In this document: one piece after another, positions 6,922-15,486 of the stretch
Numbering within the stretch: the first letter of the stretch is position 1
Layout of the letters: the number at the start of each line of letters is the position of its first letter
Sequence record: MZ475895.1
Strand: one strand, 5' to 3'
DNA: 64,000 bases
Notes under the pieces: model-generated
What the model was told of the DNA's origin: nothing
The model's database searches: none
What the model saw: only the letters and a program-made list of their open reading frames with translations
Made by a program: the position numbers and the translations under genes

Positions 6922-7743
6922 TTAGTCGCCCTCTGCACTATACCAGAAGTCCCAGCCGACAACGTTTGTGCCAGTAGACTTAATGGTGAAGCCACCCAAC
7001 AGGGCGTTCTCGTTCATCGCACTTGTACCATCCAGATTATATAGCTGGAAGGTCCGAGATTGATTGGTTGCAGTATTGACGAACGTGATTTGCACAGACA
7101 CACAGCGGTTGATGAACGGGCTGTTGAAGATAACGTTAATCGTATCAGTAGTGGATGTATTCACCACACGACCAAAGTTCTTCGTGTAACCAGTGTTCAG
7201 ATCGCGGTCGCTACCAATCCATGCGTTAGGAATAGGCTGACCTGTGATAGGGTCAAGCGCTTGTGCTACGAGATACTCATTGATAGCAGCATCACGTCCT
7301 GCATTACCAGTAGGACCAGTTGGGCCTGTAGGACCCACACCACCTGTGTTACCTGTAGCGCCGACAGGCCCTGTGTTACCAGTAGGACCTTGACGGCCAC
7401 GCTGACCACGAGGGCCAGGACAACCGTCTTCACCATCAGCACCATCACGACCATCAGCACCAGGCAGGCCACGTAGACCGTCTTTACCCTGCTTACCTTC
7501 CTTGCCTGACTTCAACTGGTCAGCAGTAGGCAGGCCAGGCACTGTGCTCTGACTACCGTCTGGCCATACAATAGTAAGCGTACCACTCACTGGGTCGAAC
7601 TGTACGCCTTGTGATCCCGGAATGTTAGCTGCCTCTGTCGGGTCAATAAACGCAACAGAGTTCAGCGTTTGTTTGCCGAGAACTTTACCGACAGGAAATG
7701 CACCGCCATCGATTAGTCCCGGACTTATTTTCTGCAAAGACAT
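6922..7743 (-). CDS. Collagen-like fibre protein with C-terminal lectin-like beta domain
   Basis: 273 aa. About 24 Gly-X-Y triplets. C-terminal 'INVIFNSPFINRCVSVQIT' is typical of phage fibre tip/H-type-lectin-like domains. Confidence 0.75.
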   Translation of the reverse strand: MSLQKISPGLIDGGAFPVGKVLGKQTLNSVAFIDPTEAANIPGSQGVQFDPVSGTLTIVWPDGSQSTVPGLPTADQLKSGKEGKQGKDGLRGLPGADGRDGADGEDGCPGPRGQRGRQGPTGNTGPVGATGNTGGVGPTGPTGPTGNAGRDAAINEYLVAQALDPITGQPIPNAWIGSDRDLNTGYTKNFGRVVNTSTTDTINVIFNSPFINRCVSVQITFVNTATNQSRTFQLYNLDGTSAMNENALLGGFTIKSTGTNVVGWDFWYSAEGD

Positions 7744-7966: not shown

Positions 7967-10840
7967 TTAGATTTCGTCAGGTTCCCAACACAGAATAGGA
8001 CGGCGATACACTTGGAATACGCCAGTAGGCGCGTAGCTTGAGCTAAGGTATTCTTTAGCGTTCGTACTGAGGCTACGTTCTGACGTAAGCAACTGTTGCC
8101 TGTTGTGCGTCCACTGACAACGACCACAAGACTCTGCTTCGATACCCGCATCTGAATCCCAACCAGGCACGTCGAATGTTTTGTTCCATCCGTTGAAGTG
8201 GTGAGTAGACACCGCTCCGTTGCCTGTTGCACACAGCACCATGTACTGGTAGTCAGACTCGAAGTAGATAGGTACGTTACGGCCTGTAGGGATAGAAGGA
8301 CCGTTAGCGTTATACGTCAACTGCCAACCAGTACGGTCTGCTGAGCCTGTAGACATGAACAACGGTCTACGGATAATCATCATGATACCGTTCTGCGTTC
8401 CGTTGTCGCTAGTCTTAGTGCAGTACGCATTACAGCGTAGCGCACGGTCAACAGTGAACAACGTACTGTTGGAGAAGTCAGCATTGTACAGGTTAGCAGC
8501 CCACTGAGGTAAGTTAGCAGCTTCTGGTACAATGAAGTGGCGCTCTGCCAGTTCCAGATCACCGTAGCGGTCATAAGCAAACACGATATACTCATAGCCT
8601 GCATCGATCTGAATGTTGTGACCTTGAGAACCCACACCAGTCCACTTCCAAACAATCTGCCAGTCGTTAGTATCACGTCCAGGCGTATCGTTTATCAGGC
8701 CGTACTTGCGTTCGTATATCTGCCATACTCGGGAGCCACCAGTTGCAGCAAAGTACAAGCTGCCTGGATTAGAGCGGTCACCACCACAACGAGTAAGATG
8801 GTCAGGGCCTGCTTCGTTGTAAGCACTGGCTCCGCCTACACCGTCAAACATTTCCCAGTTCATCATCAAGTGAGAGGTGCACAACTCATTTGGTCCGCTA
8901 TCATCCGTTGTCGTAACAAGATATTCGTACTGGTCAGCAAACGGATAGTAGACAGTCTCTGTTCCTGCCATAGCAACACGACGAACCCAATCGTGTGACT
9001 GCACTTTAGGTACAGGGAAGCAAGGGTTAGTCACAGACACGACGAAACTTTTAGTCTCGTACATCGGCAGCTTTTTGAAGCGGTTATCACGAATCGTCAC
9101 CGTGTGCTTCATGCCGTAAGTCTGTGCACCGTCCATACCGCCTAGCACTTTGTAGTAGCTGAGATGCGCACTCTTGGTGCTCTCATACAGACCAGTGATA
9201 CCTAAAGACATTGCGCTGTTGCGGTCAGTACCACAGCAATACTGATTGCCGTAGCTGTCATACGCGAAGCCCACAGAGAAGTAGCTATCAGGGTCAGACG
9301 ACTGAGGTCCGTAGTACATCTCAGTAGGCGCATTGCCCTCACCAACACCAGGCAGGCCAAAGCAGCAATAGCAACCGCGATACTGATACTGTCCGCCTTC
9401 GTACACGCGACGAGAAGCACCGATGCGATACATAGCACCAGCAAGCCCGCCTTGAGTACGGTTAACGTTCGCCGTGTCATAGGAAACGACATAGACAAAG
9501 TGGTCGGCGCCAATCGAGTTCAGGAACGCAGCCATATTAGCAGCATTCGTCGTGCCTGGCGCAGTACCTTCGGCAGAAACGTGAATGTCATACGCTCTGC
9601 GATCTACGAGCACTTGGTCGGACTTGCGAATCTTGTACACGTTGAAGCCGCGAGAATCTCGGTAGTACACGCCATTCACATACGTGTAACCAACATCGCC
9701 TGTGTCAAGCGTGCGCTGATAACCTACGATGTGGCTGAACACGCTACTACGCGCTTGCAGACTCGCACCGTTATCGTTCGACCAGTTGACAGATACATCA
9801 CCCGCAGCCATACGCGCAGCCCAATCATCAGGCTTGTATGGGTAAGTGGTCACGTCAAAGTTAACGCCATACGCACTGCCTATTTCTACGCAGCACGGGT
9901 CACGATAGATGATCTCTGGGTCAAGAATAACATCGTCAGGAATATCGACTTGACCACAGTACATCTGACGCCACACACCAGCTTGACCGCCGATAGAACC
10001 CGGGCCAGCAGCACCTGCTCCAGAGTTAAACTGGTAAGCAGCAGACGCACGATAGTTCTTTTGGTTGCTTAACTGTGGAACGTTCAGCCAGCCTACGTGG
10101 TCACCAAAAGCATTGATGGACTTAGAACGCGCAGCCTGAGTAGCTACAACGTTAGCAGCACCATTGCTTGTGATACCAAGCGGACTAAAGATAGCGTTGA
10201 AGTTAACGTTACCCTCGTACGGTCCTTTCTGGAGTACAATCAGGCTAACGCCGTTACGATGCGCTTCACGCAAGGCATTGAGCATTGCAGTAGGCATCGA
10301 CTGTCCGCTAGAAGATAGCAGCAGCATAACGCAGGACCATTGCTGGAAATACTTATAGGTTCCGTCGTAACCGTAAGCACCAGCATTGATTTCATCCCAC
10401 GTATGAGACAGCATGTCCAGAGGCATACGCTCAAGATAATGAACAAGCTGTCCCCATGACTCCATTGCAGACTCATCATCCACAGAAGCACCATCACTAA
10501 TGACCAGCATCGTCGAGCCAGCAGTGATGTTAGAGTTATAGGCACGCTCGGTCAGGAACTGGCGCAGCGCACCCATGTTGTTAATTGTGGTATTGCGATA
10601 GTTACCCATCCAGCCGTAGCCGTCAGTAACCATTGGACTATCACTGCGAATGAAGCTACCGTTCATATACACAGAACCGTAACCGCAAACATACGCGAGA
10701 GCATGACCATCAACAACAAAGGATGTGTAGCGATTGCTATCAACGCCCATCGCATCAACAGCAGCTACGGAGCCATCACCTACACCGCCAGTAAAGACAG
10801 GAGTAATGCCTCGTGCATACAAGCAACTTTGTTGCAGCAT
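7967..10840 (-). CDS. Large fibre/receptor-binding protein with ILEI (PANDER-like) domain and three C-terminal repeats
   Basis: 957 aa. RGFNVYKI...RRAYD...AAFLNSIG...VVSYD...AMYRIGAS...YRGCYCCFG matches the ILEI pattern. Three ~100-aa repeats end in YERKY/IRRP/YRRP. Confidence 0.65.
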   Translation of the reverse strand: MLQQSCLYARGITPVFTGGVGDGSVAAVDAMGVDSNRYTSFVVDGHALAYVCGYGSVYMNGSFIRSDSPMVTDGYGWMGNYRNTTINNMGALRQFLTERAYNSNITAGSTMLVISDGASVDDESAMESWGQLVHYLERMPLDMLSHTWDEINAGAYGYDGTYKYFQQWSCVMLLLSSSGQSMPTAMLNALREAHRNGVSLIVLQKGPYEGNVNFNAIFSPLGITSNGAANVVATQAARSKSINAFGDHVGWLNVPQLSNQKNYRASAAYQFNSGAGAAGPGSIGGQAGVWRQMYCGQVDIPDDVILDPEIIYRDPCCVEIGSAYGVNFDVTTYPYKPDDWAARMAAGDVSVNWSNDNGASLQARSSVFSHIVGYQRTLDTGDVGYTYVNGVYYRDSRGFNVYKIRKSDQVLVDRRAYDIHVSAEGTAPGTTNAANMAAFLNSIGADHFVYVVSYDTANVNRTQGGLAGAMYRIGASRRVYEGGQYQYRGCYCCFGLPGVGEGNAPTEMYYGPQSSDPDSYFSVGFAYDSYGNQYCCGTDRNSAMSLGITGLYESTKSAHLSYYKVLGGMDGAQTYGMKHTVTIRDNRFKKLPMYETKSFVVSVTNPCFPVPKVQSHDWVRRVAMAGTETVYYPFADQYEYLVTTTDDSGPNELCTSHLMMNWEMFDGVGGASAYNEAGPDHLTRCGGDRSNPGSLYFAATGGSRVWQIYERKYGLINDTPGRDTNDWQIVWKWTGVGSQGHNIQIDAGYEYIVFAYDRYGDLELAERHFIVPEAANLPQWAANLYNADFSNSTLFTVDRALRCNAYCTKTSDNGTQNGIMMIIRRPLFMSTGSADRTGWQLTYNANGPSIPTGRNVPIYFESDYQYMVLCATGNGAVSTHHFNGWNKTFDVPGWDSDAGIEAESCGRCQWTHNRQQLLTSERSLSTNAKEYLSSSYAPTGVFQVYRRPILCWEPDEI

Positions 10841-10883: not shown

Positions 10884-12905
10884 TTAGCCAAATACAATCT
10901 CAGTGATTGCAAGATACGTCACATCGTTTGAGTCACCACGGTCACCAGAACCGTAGGCCATCAACCAAATCTCTTCACCTGCAGGGATGTTAGTGTCGAA
11001 TGTGATACGTTGCAGAACGTTAGCGCTTGAGTAAACACGCTGCGCTGCACCAGCACCCGCATAACGTTCGTAGATGGACATGTCGTGCCAGCTACCGTTA
11101 TTGCCATCAAACACCCAATCAAATGTGATTCGCTTGATAGGTCGAGTGAAGAAGTTATTCCACTTGAACCAACCATTCGAGCCACCCCAGAAGTTCATAT
11201 AGCTGCCGTCCCAAACCTTCAGGTTCTCAATGCCGCCACTGACTGTACGACCGCCAGTCTGTGTGAATGCATAGCAGTACCATGGGAATGGATCTGAATC
11301 AGGTGGCTGTGAGTTACCACCAGCAACTGTGATGCAGCGATACGGAACTGTGAAGTCTCTGACGTTAATGTGCGGAGGCTGAATCGGACAGTACACATAG
11401 TAAGACCAGTCACACCCAATAGGGCCTGTAACGCGCACTGTGATTTCAGAACGCAGGACATGCTCAGGGTATTTCCAGAACTCAAGTGTACCGACAGCGC
11501 CTGCTACGACAATCGACGTATCAAGCAGATTCATATCACGGTCAAACACCTCGAACTTGGTATCGAATGAGTTAGCAACGCATACGACCAGCTCTGCTCG
11601 GATATCTGTCTGTGTGCCTAACGCAAAATTATCTTCTGTGGTTGGATGACCGGCAGAGTAAACGCTGTAGCTTTGGCACGGATGCATGAACTCACGCGCA
11701 CCACGCTCCGAAGGACAATAAAGGCTGTAGAAGAAGCTGTCGAGTGACTCAGCATTTCCAAAGTCTTTAGATACCACGCGCACCATAATGTCACACGCGA
11801 TGTTCTTAGGGTCAAAGTAGAAATACAGATAACCCTCAAGTGTCTTCGCATCAAGCGTTGTTGCAATACGTCTACCGTTTTGATACACCTCAATGAAGTC
11901 GAGCGTTTCCCAAGAGGTGTAATCAAGGTACATCCAGCCTGCTGTCCAGCCAACAAAGTGATAATACTCGAACGCGTTAGCATTCTGAATACGCTCTGCA
12001 ATAGGCCACACTGAGGCATGACACGGAGCTGGGAAGACTGGCGTGCCGATATAGTCAGGATTGATAACGTCAGGATAGTTGATAACGTCATACGCAGCTT
12101 GACTATCAAGCGCTAACCCACCACGGTCAGAAGGCGCAGAAAGCAGAGGAGGATAAACCATCATGCTCCAGCCGTAACCTTGAGTTGTGCGCACACGTAT
12201 CATGATACGCATATCGGCAGCGTCAGGGTCAAACTGGAACTTGATGCGAGAACGTCCTGTTACTTTGCCGCAAGATGAAGCTACGCGCACGCCCATGTGA
12301 TAGACGTCAATGCTCGCACCAGCTGGCGCATACGAAGCAAAGTTAACCTCGACGTAACCTTCAGTTGCAGGCAGCGCATAGATCGTTTCAGTGATAACAG
12401 CACCACGACCGTGAGTAGATGCGTAAGGCACGTTGGGGTTAGCATACGTGCCCAGACCTGCTCTCGATGCTACGCCGACAGGGTCATAAGACTCAAGCGT
12501 CTTGATGCCTGGGCGATTGATACTGCGACCAGTTGGAGGTGCTGACGAGTTGACGACACCGAAGCCTGTACGACCCGCATCAGGCAAGTCGAAGCCTATT
12601 GGATAGCCCCCAAGAATCGTGTAGCTCTCACGACCACCACTGCCTATACCGTTACCGGAGCCTTTGGTTGTTGACGTAGGGCCGCCGCCACATGCACCTG
12701 TTTCAAGATTCGAACAGGGATCATCATACGTAGGGTCAAACGTGTCATCGATTAAATGCCAGCGCTTGCCCCACTGATTACGCACGCTGAACTTCTCAGG
12801 TGTTAGAGGAGTCCAGTCACCTTCCTTGGTGCGAACGTACATGGGCGTATCGACACAATCAAGCCAACCGTTATTCGCAGCATTACGAACGCGAAAACGT
12901 GACAT
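10884..12905 (-). CDS. Structural protein with three tandem beta-sandwich repeats
   Basis: 673 aa. Three repeats of the form E..(Y/F)...G...I(D/E)V(Y/F)..G..(V/I)A....F.FDP....I.VRV...W...YCP. Confidence 0.7.
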   Translation of the reverse strand: MSRFRVRNAANNGWLDCVDTPMYVRTKEGDWTPLTPEKFSVRNQWGKRWHLIDDTFDPTYDDPCSNLETGACGGGPTSTTKGSGNGIGSGGRESYTILGGYPIGFDLPDAGRTGFGVVNSSAPPTGRSINRPGIKTLESYDPVGVASRAGLGTYANPNVPYASTHGRGAVITETIYALPATEGYVEVNFASYAPAGASIDVYHMGVRVASSCGKVTGRSRIKFQFDPDAADMRIMIRVRTTQGYGWSMMVYPPLLSAPSDRGGLALDSQAAYDVINYPDVINPDYIGTPVFPAPCHASVWPIAERIQNANAFEYYHFVGWTAGWMYLDYTSWETLDFIEVYQNGRRIATTLDAKTLEGYLYFYFDPKNIACDIMVRVVSKDFGNAESLDSFFYSLYCPSERGAREFMHPCQSYSVYSAGHPTTEDNFALGTQTDIRAELVVCVANSFDTKFEVFDRDMNLLDTSIVVAGAVGTLEFWKYPEHVLRSEITVRVTGPIGCDWSYYVYCPIQPPHINVRDFTVPYRCITVAGGNSQPPDSDPFPWYCYAFTQTGGRTVSGGIENLKVWDGSYMNFWGGSNGWFKWNNFFTRPIKRITFDWVFDGNNGSWHDMSIYERYAGAGAAQRVYSSANVLQRITFDTNIPAGEEIWLMAYGSGDRGDSNDVTYLAITEIVFG

Positions 12906-12916
12906 GTACTATCTCC

Positions 12917-13408
12917 TTACGGTCTGACCCAGATAGCGCCTGCTGGAACTTCTTGATCTTGAGCGGGGTCCGTATCTTGTACGAAGACAGCTACCACACC
13001 TGGGTTTCCAGGAGCACCAGTCGGGCCTGTAGCGCCAGTAGGACCTGCTGGACCACGAATACCCACATAGCCTTGCTTGCCTGGCAGACCATCGATACCA
13101 CGAGGACCAACACAGCCGTCAGTACCGCGTTTACCGTCAGAACCCATCAGGCCGTCGATACCATCACGACCAGAAGCACCAACGCCACCTTCAGGACCGT
13201 AGCCGATGCTGTAGATGGTAGGTAGGCCAGAGATAGCGAGCTTTCCGATACTCGGAATATTGATAGACAGCACACCTGTAAGTTGATCGAAGGCGCCTTG
13301 TAGCGTTGTTTCGTCTTCGGCAACATCAACAGACACACCGCCTTGAGTTGCTACTACCTTACCAGACGCATTCGTCTTGAGTAGCGATATATCAACCTTT
13401 TCTACCAC
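12917..13408 (-). CDS. Collagen-like fibre protein
   Basis: 163 aa. About 23 Gly-X-Y triplets and a C-terminal AGAIWVRP motif. Confidence 0.75.
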   Translation of the reverse strand: MVEKVDISLLKTNASGKVVATQGGVSVDVAEDETTLQGAFDQLTGVLSINIPSIGKLAISGLPTIYSIGYGPEGGVGASGRDGIDGLMGSDGKRGTDGCVGPRGIDGLPGKQGYVGIRGPAGPTGATGPTGAPGNPGVVAVFVQDTDPAQDQEVPAGAIWVRP

Positions 13409-13417
13409 GAGAACTCC

Positions 13418-14050
13418 TTATGGCCATGTGGTGCCTTGATCTTTAGTAGGGTCCACCCACAGCGTCCCGGCAGCTACTGCTCCAGGCTGAGTGGCGCTAA
13501 CGATAATTGCAAGACGACCGGAAGGACCTGCAGGACCAGTTGGGCCAGTAGGACCAGTACCACCAGTAGAGCCAGTAGGACCAGTACCACCGCGAGGACC
13601 AGTAGGTCCAGTCGGCCCCATAGGTCCTTCACGACCTTCTCTGCCCGTAGGGCCAACATTACCGTCACGGCCATCACGACCATCCGGGCCTGGTATGCCT
13701 TGCTCGCCATCTGGACCAACAGGGCCTGTACAGCCTGGACCGCCCGTTGCACCATCACGACCATCACGACCATCTTTTCCGTCTGCACCTGTTTCACCTT
13801 TCTGACCTGTACGACCCGCTGGAATATCAGACGCAGTTGGGAAACCTGAGACTTTGAGACTACTGCCGTTAGCAAAGCGCAGAGTTAACACGCCCGCAGT
13901 AGCGTCATACGAGGAATCTGACGTGACCTCTGATGGAGCTTCGGACTCAGCGCTGTTAACGACAAGTGTGCCGCCAGATGCTCGGACAGGTGTTGCAACA
14001 GAACTTATGCCCGCAGCGATTAAACTTGTTTTTACCTTTATCAAACTCAT
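13418..14050 (-). CDS. Collagen-like fibre protein
   Basis: 210 aa. 34 Gly-X-Y triplets and a C-terminal AGTLWVDP motif. Confidence 0.75.
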
Positions 14051-15486
14051 TACGTCTTCTCCGCCTGAGCAGTCATATCCGTGTTATGAGCCAGAACATC
14101 ACCAACGAAATAGCAGTCGAAAGGTTCAACGTCTATGTCTACGGTATTAACGAGTTGGTCTATACGACGACATTCGTATACAGACACAGGACCTTTACGT
14201 CCTCTGACTTGCATTCCTTGCTTAACTTCACGAGCAGGAACATAGCGCCATTGCTTATCATCGTAGATCAGCACAGGATGTTCGTGCGTAAACTTCTGTC
14301 CGTTAATGACGAAGTAGTGATCTTCCTGACCGTACTTGAGTGCTCGAACAGCAGCATAGACATTCTTACCTTTCAGGCTCGGCGAGGACCATTTACGGAA
14401 CTCTTTAGGCTGATTGGAGAACGCAGCAAGCATATCGCCTACAGACAAACGCTCAACAGGCACAGAGCCTGCGATTGTATGCACGGTAGAGCCGAACACG
14501 ATACAACCAGATGTTTTACTCACAGGGTTACGTGCAACTACAGTCAGAGCAGACTTCACAGTGACTGTAGGACGAGATGGTTGCCCCATGTCTGTTACTA
14601 AACAACTGATGGTGCCTTTGATTGTACGATCAGCACCGAGACCAAGACGCAGATAGAAGTTAACTATGCAAGTGTTAGTCTCTATGGCGTCAAGATTAAC
14701 GCCCTCAGTTGTTGTGATTGTCCACTTGTACTTGTATGGACCCACACCGCCACGCGCATTGACAGGCAGATAAGCAAGCGAGGTAAATACGTCAGACCCT
14801 TGTACTGTGCGCGTGCCTACCATGTACAGACTAGACACAGAAGCAACAAGTGGGCTGATAGTAGGAAGAGGAGGTGCTGGCGATACGTTAGCAGTCGGGT
14901 ACAGCCACACGAACACGTTAGATGCAGTGGGCTGCACATTAGATAGCACAGCAGTTTCGATAGGCGCAGGACCCGTAGGACCCGTTGCGCCCGCGATACA
15001 GCTTGGACCGTCATTACCTCGTGGGCCGAGTATGCCAGTAGGACCTGTTGGACCGATAGGACCTGTTGGACCGTCTTTGCCATCAGGACCCGTGTCACCA
15101 TCAGGGCCAGTAGCACCATCACGGCCAGGCTCACCCGCAGTACCGTTCAGACCTCTAGCACCCGGGAGACCACCACAACCGTCAGCGCCAGTAGAGCCAT
15201 CACGACCGTCACGGCCATCACGACCCGCAGCGCCTGGTGCACCTCTCTTACCTTGCTTACCTGAACCAAACATTGCACTCGTAGGCAGGCCGGGGATATT
15301 AACTAAATCCCCATTCTGTTTGATGAGTACGAGCACGCCGTTCTTACTGTCAAACTTTACGCTTGCGATCTGTGTCGTTGTCAACACATCGGAGGATTCG
15401 AATTGAATACCACCAGCAACAGCAACAACGGATTTACCTTCATCGTTGCCTGTTGTCTCGATTTGCGAAAGTTTTAAGTCTGTCAT
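14050..15486 (-). CDS. Collagen-like fibre protein with C-terminal Hint (intein-like) domain
   Basis: 478 aa. About 29+3 Gly-X-Y triplets, a beta domain, then G|CIVFGSTV...FTHEHPV...[20 protein letters not shown]|T. Confidence 0.75.
14083..14505 (-). other. Hint / mini-intein domain (141 aa) within fibre gene
   Basis: Cys1, block B T-x-x-H (THEH), block F D, terminal His-Asn and Thr+1. No endonuclease insert. Confidence 0.75.

Follow-up and report, generated by a model that had tools for sequence, protein, structure and literature searches.

A C-terminal Hint domain of probable BIL type, with a short lysine-bearing tail, on a collagen-like fibre protein of an Erwinia jumbo phage

Introduction

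We analysed a 64,000-nucleotide stretch of the sequence record MZ475895.1 (hereafter the window, numbered from its first letter), which encodes on its minus strand a 478-aa collagen-like fibre protein that ends in a Hint domain and a tail of ten residues. The closest described systems are the A-type BIL domains, which reportedly go back to Amitai et al. 2003 and Dassa et al. 2004 and for which the structure 2LWY is said to come from Clostridium thermocellum. The phage domain resembles them in its HINT fold, in Cys1, the TxxH of block B and the C-terminal His-Asn, in having no +1 nucleophile conserved across its family, and in its location, which is in surface-type, variable proteins and not within the conserved motifs of enzymes. 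In the Protein Data Bank (PDB), 2LWY is its only significant sequence match, and Foldseek also ranks 2LWY first. The phage domain differs in standing at the extreme C-terminus of virion proteins, followed by a tail of 1-20 aa that nearly always contains a lysine, and this particular copy has Thr at +1. Published BIL domains lack a +1 nucleophile, keep His-Asn, yield mostly cleavage products and occur in variable surface proteins (PMC7664689, PMC7765530).

A second relative is BIL2 from the BUBL1 polyubiquitin-like locus of Tetrahymena thermophila (PDB 6Y75, 6TMM). Its splicing uses a lysine of the C-terminal flank as the nucleophile and yields an isopeptide bond (PMC8616854, section 2.4). Among the structural matches of the phage domain BIL2 ranks second, and its lysine chemistry is what the lysine of the phage tail would allow. 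However, BIL2 is flanked by ubiquitin-like domains, which it conjugates to targets, whereas the phage domain lies between a fibre and a 10-aa peptide; the two share only ~17% sequence identity, and the lysine reaction of the phage domain is predicted by analogy. The pretoxin HINT model (PF07591) matches orthologues of the phage domain and many members of its wider family, and it too describes a C-terminal releasing module on long surface proteins, but PT-HINT precedes a toxin domain, which it sets free, whereas here only ten residues follow N468. Hedgehog-type Hint (Hog) domains lack the terminal Asn and have a downstream sterol-recognition region, where the phage domain has HN and its 10-aa tail.

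Phage fibre maturation is known to rely on Peptidase_S74 chaperones or separate chaperone proteins. Peptidase_S74, the intramolecular chaperone of endosialidases and phage tail fibres, occupies the same position on trimeric fibres, collagen-like ones included, and presumably removes itself after assembly (PMC12220804). Its fold and chemistry are unrelated to those of Hint: it works with a Ser-Lys dyad and is itself trimeric. We found no Pfam or structural match to Peptidase_S74 in the protein studied here.

We consider it likely, at a probability of about 0.7, that the last 151 residues of this protein are a permanently fused, A-type BIL-like Hint autoprocessing domain with a 10-aa mini C-extein, carried by a collagen-like protein that forms a tail fibre or a "hair" of a hairy Erwinia jumbo myophage, and that the domain removes itself after translation. 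The Erwinia amylovora jumbo phages pEa_SNUABM_7 and pEa_SNUABM_14 belong to the hairy Myoviridae, which also include Y3, AD1, Alexandra, Yoloswag, the Dickeya JA phages, NCTB, Lu11 and PaBG (PMC6143709, PMC7412058).

Results

Identification of the Hint domain

An earlier note, made from the letters of this stretch, had described a mini-intein or Hint domain of 141 aa at the very end of a collagen fibre. The translation of the open reading frame bears this out in every element: Cys1, the THEH of block B, the terminal HN, Thr+1, the length of 141 aa and the C-extein of ten residues are all in place. The absence of a homing endonuclease also stands, as 141 aa leaves no room for one. The protein is 100% identical to the "virion structural protein" of Erwinia phage pEa_SNUABM_7/14.

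We compared the domain and its orthologues with family models, the check that the note had proposed. Pfam Hint_2 matched 17 of 20 orthologues (best 1.9e-5), and PT-HINT matched 11 of the 20 at E<=0.01 (best 2.4e-6) but did not match this copy at E<=1; an NCBIfam scan returned no match for the Hint region. Searching the PDB with the single sequence gave a weak full-length match to the BIL domain 2LWY (E 0.009). With a profile built from the 20 orthologues, 2LWY was matched over its full length at E 2.6e-7 (residues 329-467); it was the only Hint-type PDB match below E 1e-3, the next being the Pho RadA intein (0.03). The AlphaFold2 model has a predicted local distance difference test score (pLDDT) of 85-92 across residues 328-468. 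A Foldseek search with this model ranked 2LWY first (E 4.4e-7, TM 0.80, probability 1.00) and Tetrahymena BIL2 second. VIA-align superposed it with Z scores of 16.8-17.8 (root-mean-square deviation 1.4-1.9 A over 123-133 residues) on 1AT0 (Hedgehog Hint), 3IFJ (RecA mini-intein), 6Y75 (BIL2) and 2LWY.

The residues expected to carry out the chemistry are conserved throughout. C328, T400, H403, H467 and N468 are invariant in the alignment of all 20 orthologues, as is Gly327 at position -1. Among 91 distant relatives the Thr and His of block B are >90% conserved, and HN is invariant in all 91. In inteins, the block B Thr/His pair activates the N-terminal scissile bond. Profile comparison, the predicted model, its superpositions and the Pfam matches of the orthologues together confirm the last 141 residues before the tail as a genuine Hint domain at the extreme C-terminus of a collagen-like fibre, as the earlier note had proposed, and the domain is best read as an A-type BIL-like autoprocessing domain.

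Inheritance of the domain with the fibre gene

The domain diverges together with the protein that carries it. Across the 20 orthologues, the pairwise identities of the Hint domain and of the fibre body outside the collagen run rise and fall together (Mantel r 0.90, a value that none of 2000 permutations attained), and Hint is slightly better conserved than the body (67% vs 64%). The ratio of nonsynonymous to synonymous substitution rates (dN/dS) is 0.06-0.19 against eight relatives, with dS saturated, which indicates purifying selection. The domain is kept from Erwinia phages out to phage NCTB. The same succession of genes, Hint fibre followed by the 210-aa and then the 163-aa collagen protein, is seen in NCTB, Yersinia phage fHe-Yen9-02, Alcaligenes phage Afa-NA1 and metagenomic contigs. 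Searching the nearest complete genome with the 20-orthologue profile recovered a single Hint domain only, together with three collagen paralogues; the PT-HINT family search of the same genome gave no match and missed the known domain as well, so this search is insensitive here. Given the missing endonuclease, the co-divergence with the fibre and the purifying selection, the Hint domain is, as far as sequence comparison reaches, a fixed part of the gene with strictly vertical inheritance and not a mobile intein. The same co-divergence, selection and distribution from Erwinia phages to NCTB uphold the earlier suggestion that the domain is domesticated.

One lineage makes the fibre without the domain. 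The Dickeya JA phages encode an orthologous fibre (49% identity over residues 4-321) that lacks Hint: JA11_096 has 325 aa, ends in ...ARNPK five aa before the equivalent of Cys1, has no tail, and is directly followed by the ribosome-binding site (RBS) and start of the next gene. JA-type phages are the only Hint-less cases (6 of 60 phage records). Two further searches with the Ig region, one word-based and one of related loci with that region alone, returned solely the already known Hint-bearing proteins and close Hint-bearing relatives, respectively, and no further Hint-less orthologue. In the comparison of homologous fibres suggested by the earlier note, the domain is present from Erwinia phages to NCTB and absent from the Dickeya JA phages. 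In whole-genome trees NCTB lies outside the Erwinia/Dickeya phages (PMC7412058). Since this outgroup carries Hint, loss in the JA lineage is the simpler history.

The JA11 protein bears on function in two ways. JA11 makes a homologous fibre without Hint, which argues against an obligatory folding chaperone, and the idea of a folding or trimerisation chaperone found no support. In the alignment, the predicted mature end of the Hint-bearing fibre after N-terminal cleavage corresponds to the natural protein end in JA11. A classical intein insertion would predict an empty site with the exteins joined; we found no allele in which the tail is joined to the body, and the sole Hint-less orthologue type (JA11_096) stops before the junction.

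The +1 residue and the tail in the Erwinia/Dickeya clade

The +1 residue is Thr or Ser in the 20 closest orthologues. Beyond them, Yersinia phages have Val or Ala at this position, NCTB has Ala and Afa-NA1 has Met, with C1, TxxH and HN retained. The complete splicing signature that the earlier note had read here therefore holds for the Erwinia/Dickeya clade and lapses outside it. Loss of the +1 nucleophile where C1, TxxH and HN stay suggests that the conserved activity is of BIL type (cleavage or non-canonical ligation) rather than class-1 splicing. As an observation on this clade, the Thr+1 codon (14080..14082, minus strand) is ACG in all 8 Erwinia/Dickeya phages compared, despite saturated synonymous sites elsewhere in the domain.

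The tail is constrained at two levels. The codons GCG GAG AAR (A-E-K) do not vary among nine phages, and even the third, silent position of the Ala codon is fixed. The GGAG of the next gene's RBS lies inside them, and we attribute this part of the tail conservation, from the codon pattern, to the Shine-Dalgarno site of that gene. The T-D-I-V-A-K part varies synonymously and thus appears constrained as protein. Conservation of the whole tail solely as an RBS was considered and rejected: T-D-I-V-A-K varies synonymously, and the family-wide lysine would be left unexplained. The 10-aa C-extein of the earlier note is accordingly present, with the qualification that part of its conservation, at A-E-K, is that of an RBS.

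Lysine tails in the wider family

We scanned with the 152-aa Hint plus tail using HMMER, which gave 224 cluster representatives at E<=1e-3; the statistics below refer to the best 150 of these 224. The last HN lies <=20 residues from the protein end in 107 of the 150 (within 5 residues in 36 and within 6-10 in 50). Among these 107 C-terminal members, +1 is C, S or T in just 12%. Long collagen runs occur in ~16 of the best 150. The HN end motif is matched twice or more in 30 of the 150, which suggests tandem Hints. The domains upstream of the family Hints are collagen, Ig, PKD, Calx-beta, BACON and phage tail-collar domains. PT-HINT matches 50 of the 91 distant relatives strongly (best 1.1e-39), and Intein_splicing also matches many strongly. 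The genomic contexts of family members are phage tail modules. One member of 1192 aa follows a 1763-aa protein, probably the tape-measure protein, and an NlpC/P60 protein, and so stands at the position of a lambda-J-like tail protein. Another, from Shewanella, is named "phage tail protein", and a 484-kb uncultured phage has an open reading frame that ends HN-KH.

The tails share a striking composition. None of the 107 has zero length, and six consist of a single Lys. Lysine occurs in 104 of the 107 tails (97%), against 27.7 expected from the proteins' own composition, counts that come from cluster representatives still related to one another and with the HN end located by a simple motif. In 62 of the 104 the last Lys stands at the end of the protein or one residue before it, and Arg and Gly are depleted. 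Among HN motifs with >20 residues downstream (internal or tandem Hints), +1 is Lys in 45 of 85. At -1 the family most often has Gly (38 of the 75 scored).

Two simpler sources of the lysine were considered. A general C-terminal bias was rejected on the basis of 94 control open reading frames from related phage loci, whose C-termini gave 30.8 +/- 4.6 of 107 (maximum 47, 2000 draws). Nor does the RBS explain the lysine, given that Arg and Gly are depleted in the tails; the RBS lies outside the Lys codon in four of six other loci inspected. An invariant HN, a tail that is never of zero length and a near-universal lysine would none of them be expected if the tail were irrelevant, and together they point to tail-assisted chemistry.

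The scan also recovered other arrangements of the domain. Stand-alone Hint proteins, in which Cys1 is preceded by only a few residues and HN is followed by a short Lys tail, include one in phage NCTB (L002:5483-5944) that directly follows the Hint-bearing fibre gene, and many matches of 140-190 aa are likewise stand-alone Hints (e.g. P0037, P0050, P0064). Tandem Hint arrays occur in P0030, P0041, P0071, P0093, P0106, P0112, P0140 and P0155, with linkers such as HN-K-G-C or HN-K-G-G-G-G-C that place Lys at +1 of each unit. In Ruminococcus phage NatCom_3870 (L056:1736-3289), Hint is followed by ~126 aa with a W-H-H motif; from its sequence this C-terminal part looks like a WHH-type nuclease toxin domain, a PT-HINT arrangement in the style of polymorphic toxins in a phage genome.

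Proposed processing and alternative explanations

Our observations concern the HINT fold with its catalytic residues, the pattern of conservation and the orthologue that lacks the domain; the cleavage and the resolution of the thioester are what we infer, as follows. Cys328 would attack the carbonyl of Gly327 in an N-S acyl shift aided by T400 and H403, giving a thioester. Cyclisation of Asn468, aided by H467, would cut the bond to the tail. The thioester would then be resolved and Hint would leave, so that the mature fibre would end at Gly327, near the natural end of the JA11 orthologue. An HN that is always kept, at least one residue after Asn and a lysine that is nearly always present favour passing the acyl group to the tail itself. 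This could proceed through Thr469 in this clade, in a class-1-like manner with a peptide bond, or across the family through the conserved tail lysine (K477 here), with an isopeptide bond like that made by Tetrahymena BIL2. A small covalent tag would then sit at the fibre tip in place of a free carboxylate. The note's options of splicing a short tag onto the fibre or ligating it to a nucleophile gain from the near-universal tail lysine of the wider family. By analogy with BIL2, we tentatively raise the possibility of an undescribed large class of phage tail and fibre proteins matured by "lysine-tail splicing", in which the tail Lys would attack the thioester at the last Gly, Asn cyclisation would free Hint and the tip would become isopeptide-branched. 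In a bolder version of the analogy, some precursor might stay on the virion and spend its thioester on a nucleophile of the host surface or of the virion.

Several observations weigh against the BIL-like autoprocessing reading or its tail chemistry. Pfam Hint_2 matches this copy at E 0.003, which is under the gathering score. The predicted structure establishes the HINT fold and not the subtype: the VIA-align Z scores of BIL, mini-intein and Hedgehog domains are tied, so structure cannot separate BIL from mini-inteins or Hedgehog Hint. The JA11 fibre is tail-less, so the tag is not needed for fibre function and simple hydrolysis would give an equivalent product. K477 lies within the RBS of the next gene in this clade, and its conservation there is confounded. 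The tail is disordered in the AlphaFold2 model (pLDDT 33), and the model therefore gives no structural placement of K477 or T469 at the thioester. Across the family the position of the tail lysine ranges from +1 to +15, which is loose for a catalytic nucleophile. Finally, our literature search returned neither proteomics of the virions nor a cleavage assay, whether for this protein or for an orthologue.

Some of these points are what one would expect if the protein were cleaved and nothing else. Hint would then be a disposable C-terminal pro-domain, comparable to the S74 chaperone or to the C-propeptide of collagen, that aids folding, registration or the timing of assembly, its thioester would be hydrolysed and the tail lost. 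Cleavage at the N- and C-junctions accounts for most products of BIL domains (PMC7664689), a self-cleaving S74 chaperone often occupies this C-terminal position in collagen-like viral fibres (PMC12220804), the JA11 orthologue stops near the junction without a tail, and the tail of the model is disordered. However, JA11 builds a homologous fibre without Hint, so any role in folding would be dispensable; trimerisation is not known for BIL or Hint domains; and hydrolysis leaves unexplained the invariant HN, the one or more residues after Asn and the near-universal tail lysine; we regard cleavage alone as possible but doubtful. If the thioester is instead used between molecules, in the manner of Hedgehog or BUBL, Gly327 would be attacked by a nucleophile such as a lysine of another virion protein or of a neighbouring chain, or an amine or hydroxyl of the host surface, and the fibre tip would thereby be anchored covalently. 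Tetrahymena BIL2, the second-best structural match, attaches its N-extein to lysines on other proteins in a reaction that needs no ATP (PMC8616854), and Gly at -1 is invariant here and commonest in the family. A conserved lysine in the protein's own tail nevertheless favours an intramolecular reaction, no candidate partner was identified and JA11 is without the domain, and we judge intermolecular ligation unlikely.

The domain could also be a selfish relic, a class-1 mini-intein that lost its endonuclease, lies near the 3' end of the gene by chance and splices without benefit, merely so as not to damage the protein that carries it. It has the fold of class-1 mini-inteins such as Mtu RecA, gp41-1 and Npu DnaB (Z 16-17.7), their block A, B and G residues and, in this phage, all class-1 residues including Thr+1, and the PaBG paper reports terminase inteins in related phages. 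Unlike those inteins it is not inserted at a conserved site of a host protein, has no allele with contiguous exteins (the Hint-less orthologue stops before the junction) and is inherited strictly vertically, and the +1 nucleophile is lost in orthologues that retain C1, TxxH and HN. A single stop codon could remove a C-terminal relic, yet the domain is kept from Erwinia phages to NCTB, and many unrelated proteins of tail or adhesin-like type end in the same architecture; a relic therefore seems to us highly improbable. We give the least credence to a Hint fold that never processes itself and remains part of the mature fibre, where it would serve as a head with a structural or receptor-binding role. 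The domain is the most distal globular domain of the fibre, the usual position for receptor binding, but every catalytic residue is invariant over deep divergence and there is no surface variation of the receptor-tip type, with Hint slightly more conserved than the body.

Gene layout and neighbouring genes

The features of the fibre gene and of its neighbours are collected in Table 1. In the alignment of orthologues, Cys104 and Cys163 of the collagen region are invariant. The Ig-like domain superposes on PapD/Caf1M-like folds with VIA-align Z scores of 9.4-9.7 over residues 210-321, and it has a weak SprB-repeat motif (Pfam SprB E 0.1).

Table 1. Features of the Hint-bearing fibre gene and of the surrounding fibre module, in window positions
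Feature	Position	Strand	Evidence or remark
Whole gene, collagen-like fibre protein with C-terminal Hint domain, 478 aa	14050..15486	-	Open reading frame translation; phrog_38766 E 1e-250
N-terminal domain, aa 1-75	15262..15486	-	Shared with three paralogous collagen-like fibre proteins; phrog_8745 tail fibre match
Collagen Gly-X-Y region, aa 76-175 (~100 aa)	14962..15261	-	Pfam PF01391 Collagen E 1e-13
Ig-like beta-sandwich, aa ~205-322, PapD/Caf1M-like	14521..14874	-	AlphaFold2 pLDDT 80-90
Short linker, ending at G327 (-1 residue)			Between Ig-like domain and Hint domain
Hint (BIL-like) autoprocessing domain, C328 to N468, 141 aa	14083..14505	-	Profile, Pfam, AlphaFold2, Foldseek, VIA-align
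Cys328 (Cys1) codon	14503..14505	-	
Block B, T400-H-E-H403	14278..14289	-	Invariant in 20 orthologues
H467-N468, C-terminal end of Hint domain	ending at 14083	-	
10-aa tail (mini C-extein), T469 to T478	14053..14082	-	D470, E476 and K477 invariant
Lys477, tail lysine	14056..14058	-	Lysine near-universal in tails of the wider Hint family
Stop codon of the Hint fibre gene	14050..14052	-	
GGAG Shine-Dalgarno site of the next gene, inside codons A475-E476	14059..14062	-	8-nt spacer to ATG at 14050
Downstream 210-aa collagen-like fibre paralogue, no Hint	13418..14050	-	TAATG overlap with the Hint gene
163-aa collagen-like fibre paralogue, no Hint	12917..13408	-	
Fourth collagen-like fibre paralogue	6922..7743	-	
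673-aa protein	10884..12905	-	
957-aa Cys-rich protein of the fibre module	7967..10840	-	ILEI (interleukin-like EMT inducer) domain match E 4e-7

The window holds four paralogous collagen-like fibre genes, all on the minus strand. Common to all four are the N-terminal domain, a collagen run in which an invariant "DGC" Cys keeps the same register, and a W-x-x-P motif after the collagen. Only their C-termini diverge: two of the proteins end without a further domain, a third continues into Ig plus Hint, and the remaining one into a globular head of 110 aa. Three of these genes are adjacent and closely packed, the first pair overlapping as TAATG, and from this overlap we take the 210-aa paralogue to be translationally coupled to the Hint fibre gene. 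The close packing makes heterotrimeric or disulfide-knotted fibres conceivable.

Two further genes lie within the module. Orthologues of the 673-aa protein in NCTB, Yoloswag and Afa-NA1 are labelled "large intein domain protein". As a Pfam scan of the 673-aa protein found neither a Hint nor an intein domain, the label is apparently a mistaken annotation that passed from record to record. JA11 conserves the 957-aa ILEI protein, annotated in that phage as an ILEI domain protein.

Discussion

The presence of the domain is not new: the GenBank notes for Y3_110 and for the NCTB orthologue already say "contains intein domain". Our literature search found no paper on Hint or BIL domains in phage fibres or on the processing of this domain, and the reading as a BIL-type terminal autoprocessing domain, the breadth of the family and the lysine-tail rule appear to be new. 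A Hint-based route of fibre maturation is undescribed in the literature searched, and the domain is present on >100 diverged protein clusters, including those of jumbo phages, a 484-kb megaphage and lambda-J-like tail proteins.

The proteins that carry the domain are candidates for the unexplained "hairs" of the hairy myoviruses (PMC6143709). If they are only cleaved, this would still be a new use of a known domain, and annotation pipelines should drop the plain "intein" label. The family rule of an invariant HN, no tail of zero length and lysine in 97% of tails yields a sharp hypothesis, in which lysine acts as the splice nucleophile. If that is true, lysine splicing would be a compact natural module for C-terminal protein tagging or ligation. 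Viruses would then have, in lysine-tail splicing, their own equivalent of the BUBL/BIL2 reaction of Tetrahymena, and protein splicing would gain a further mechanistic class.

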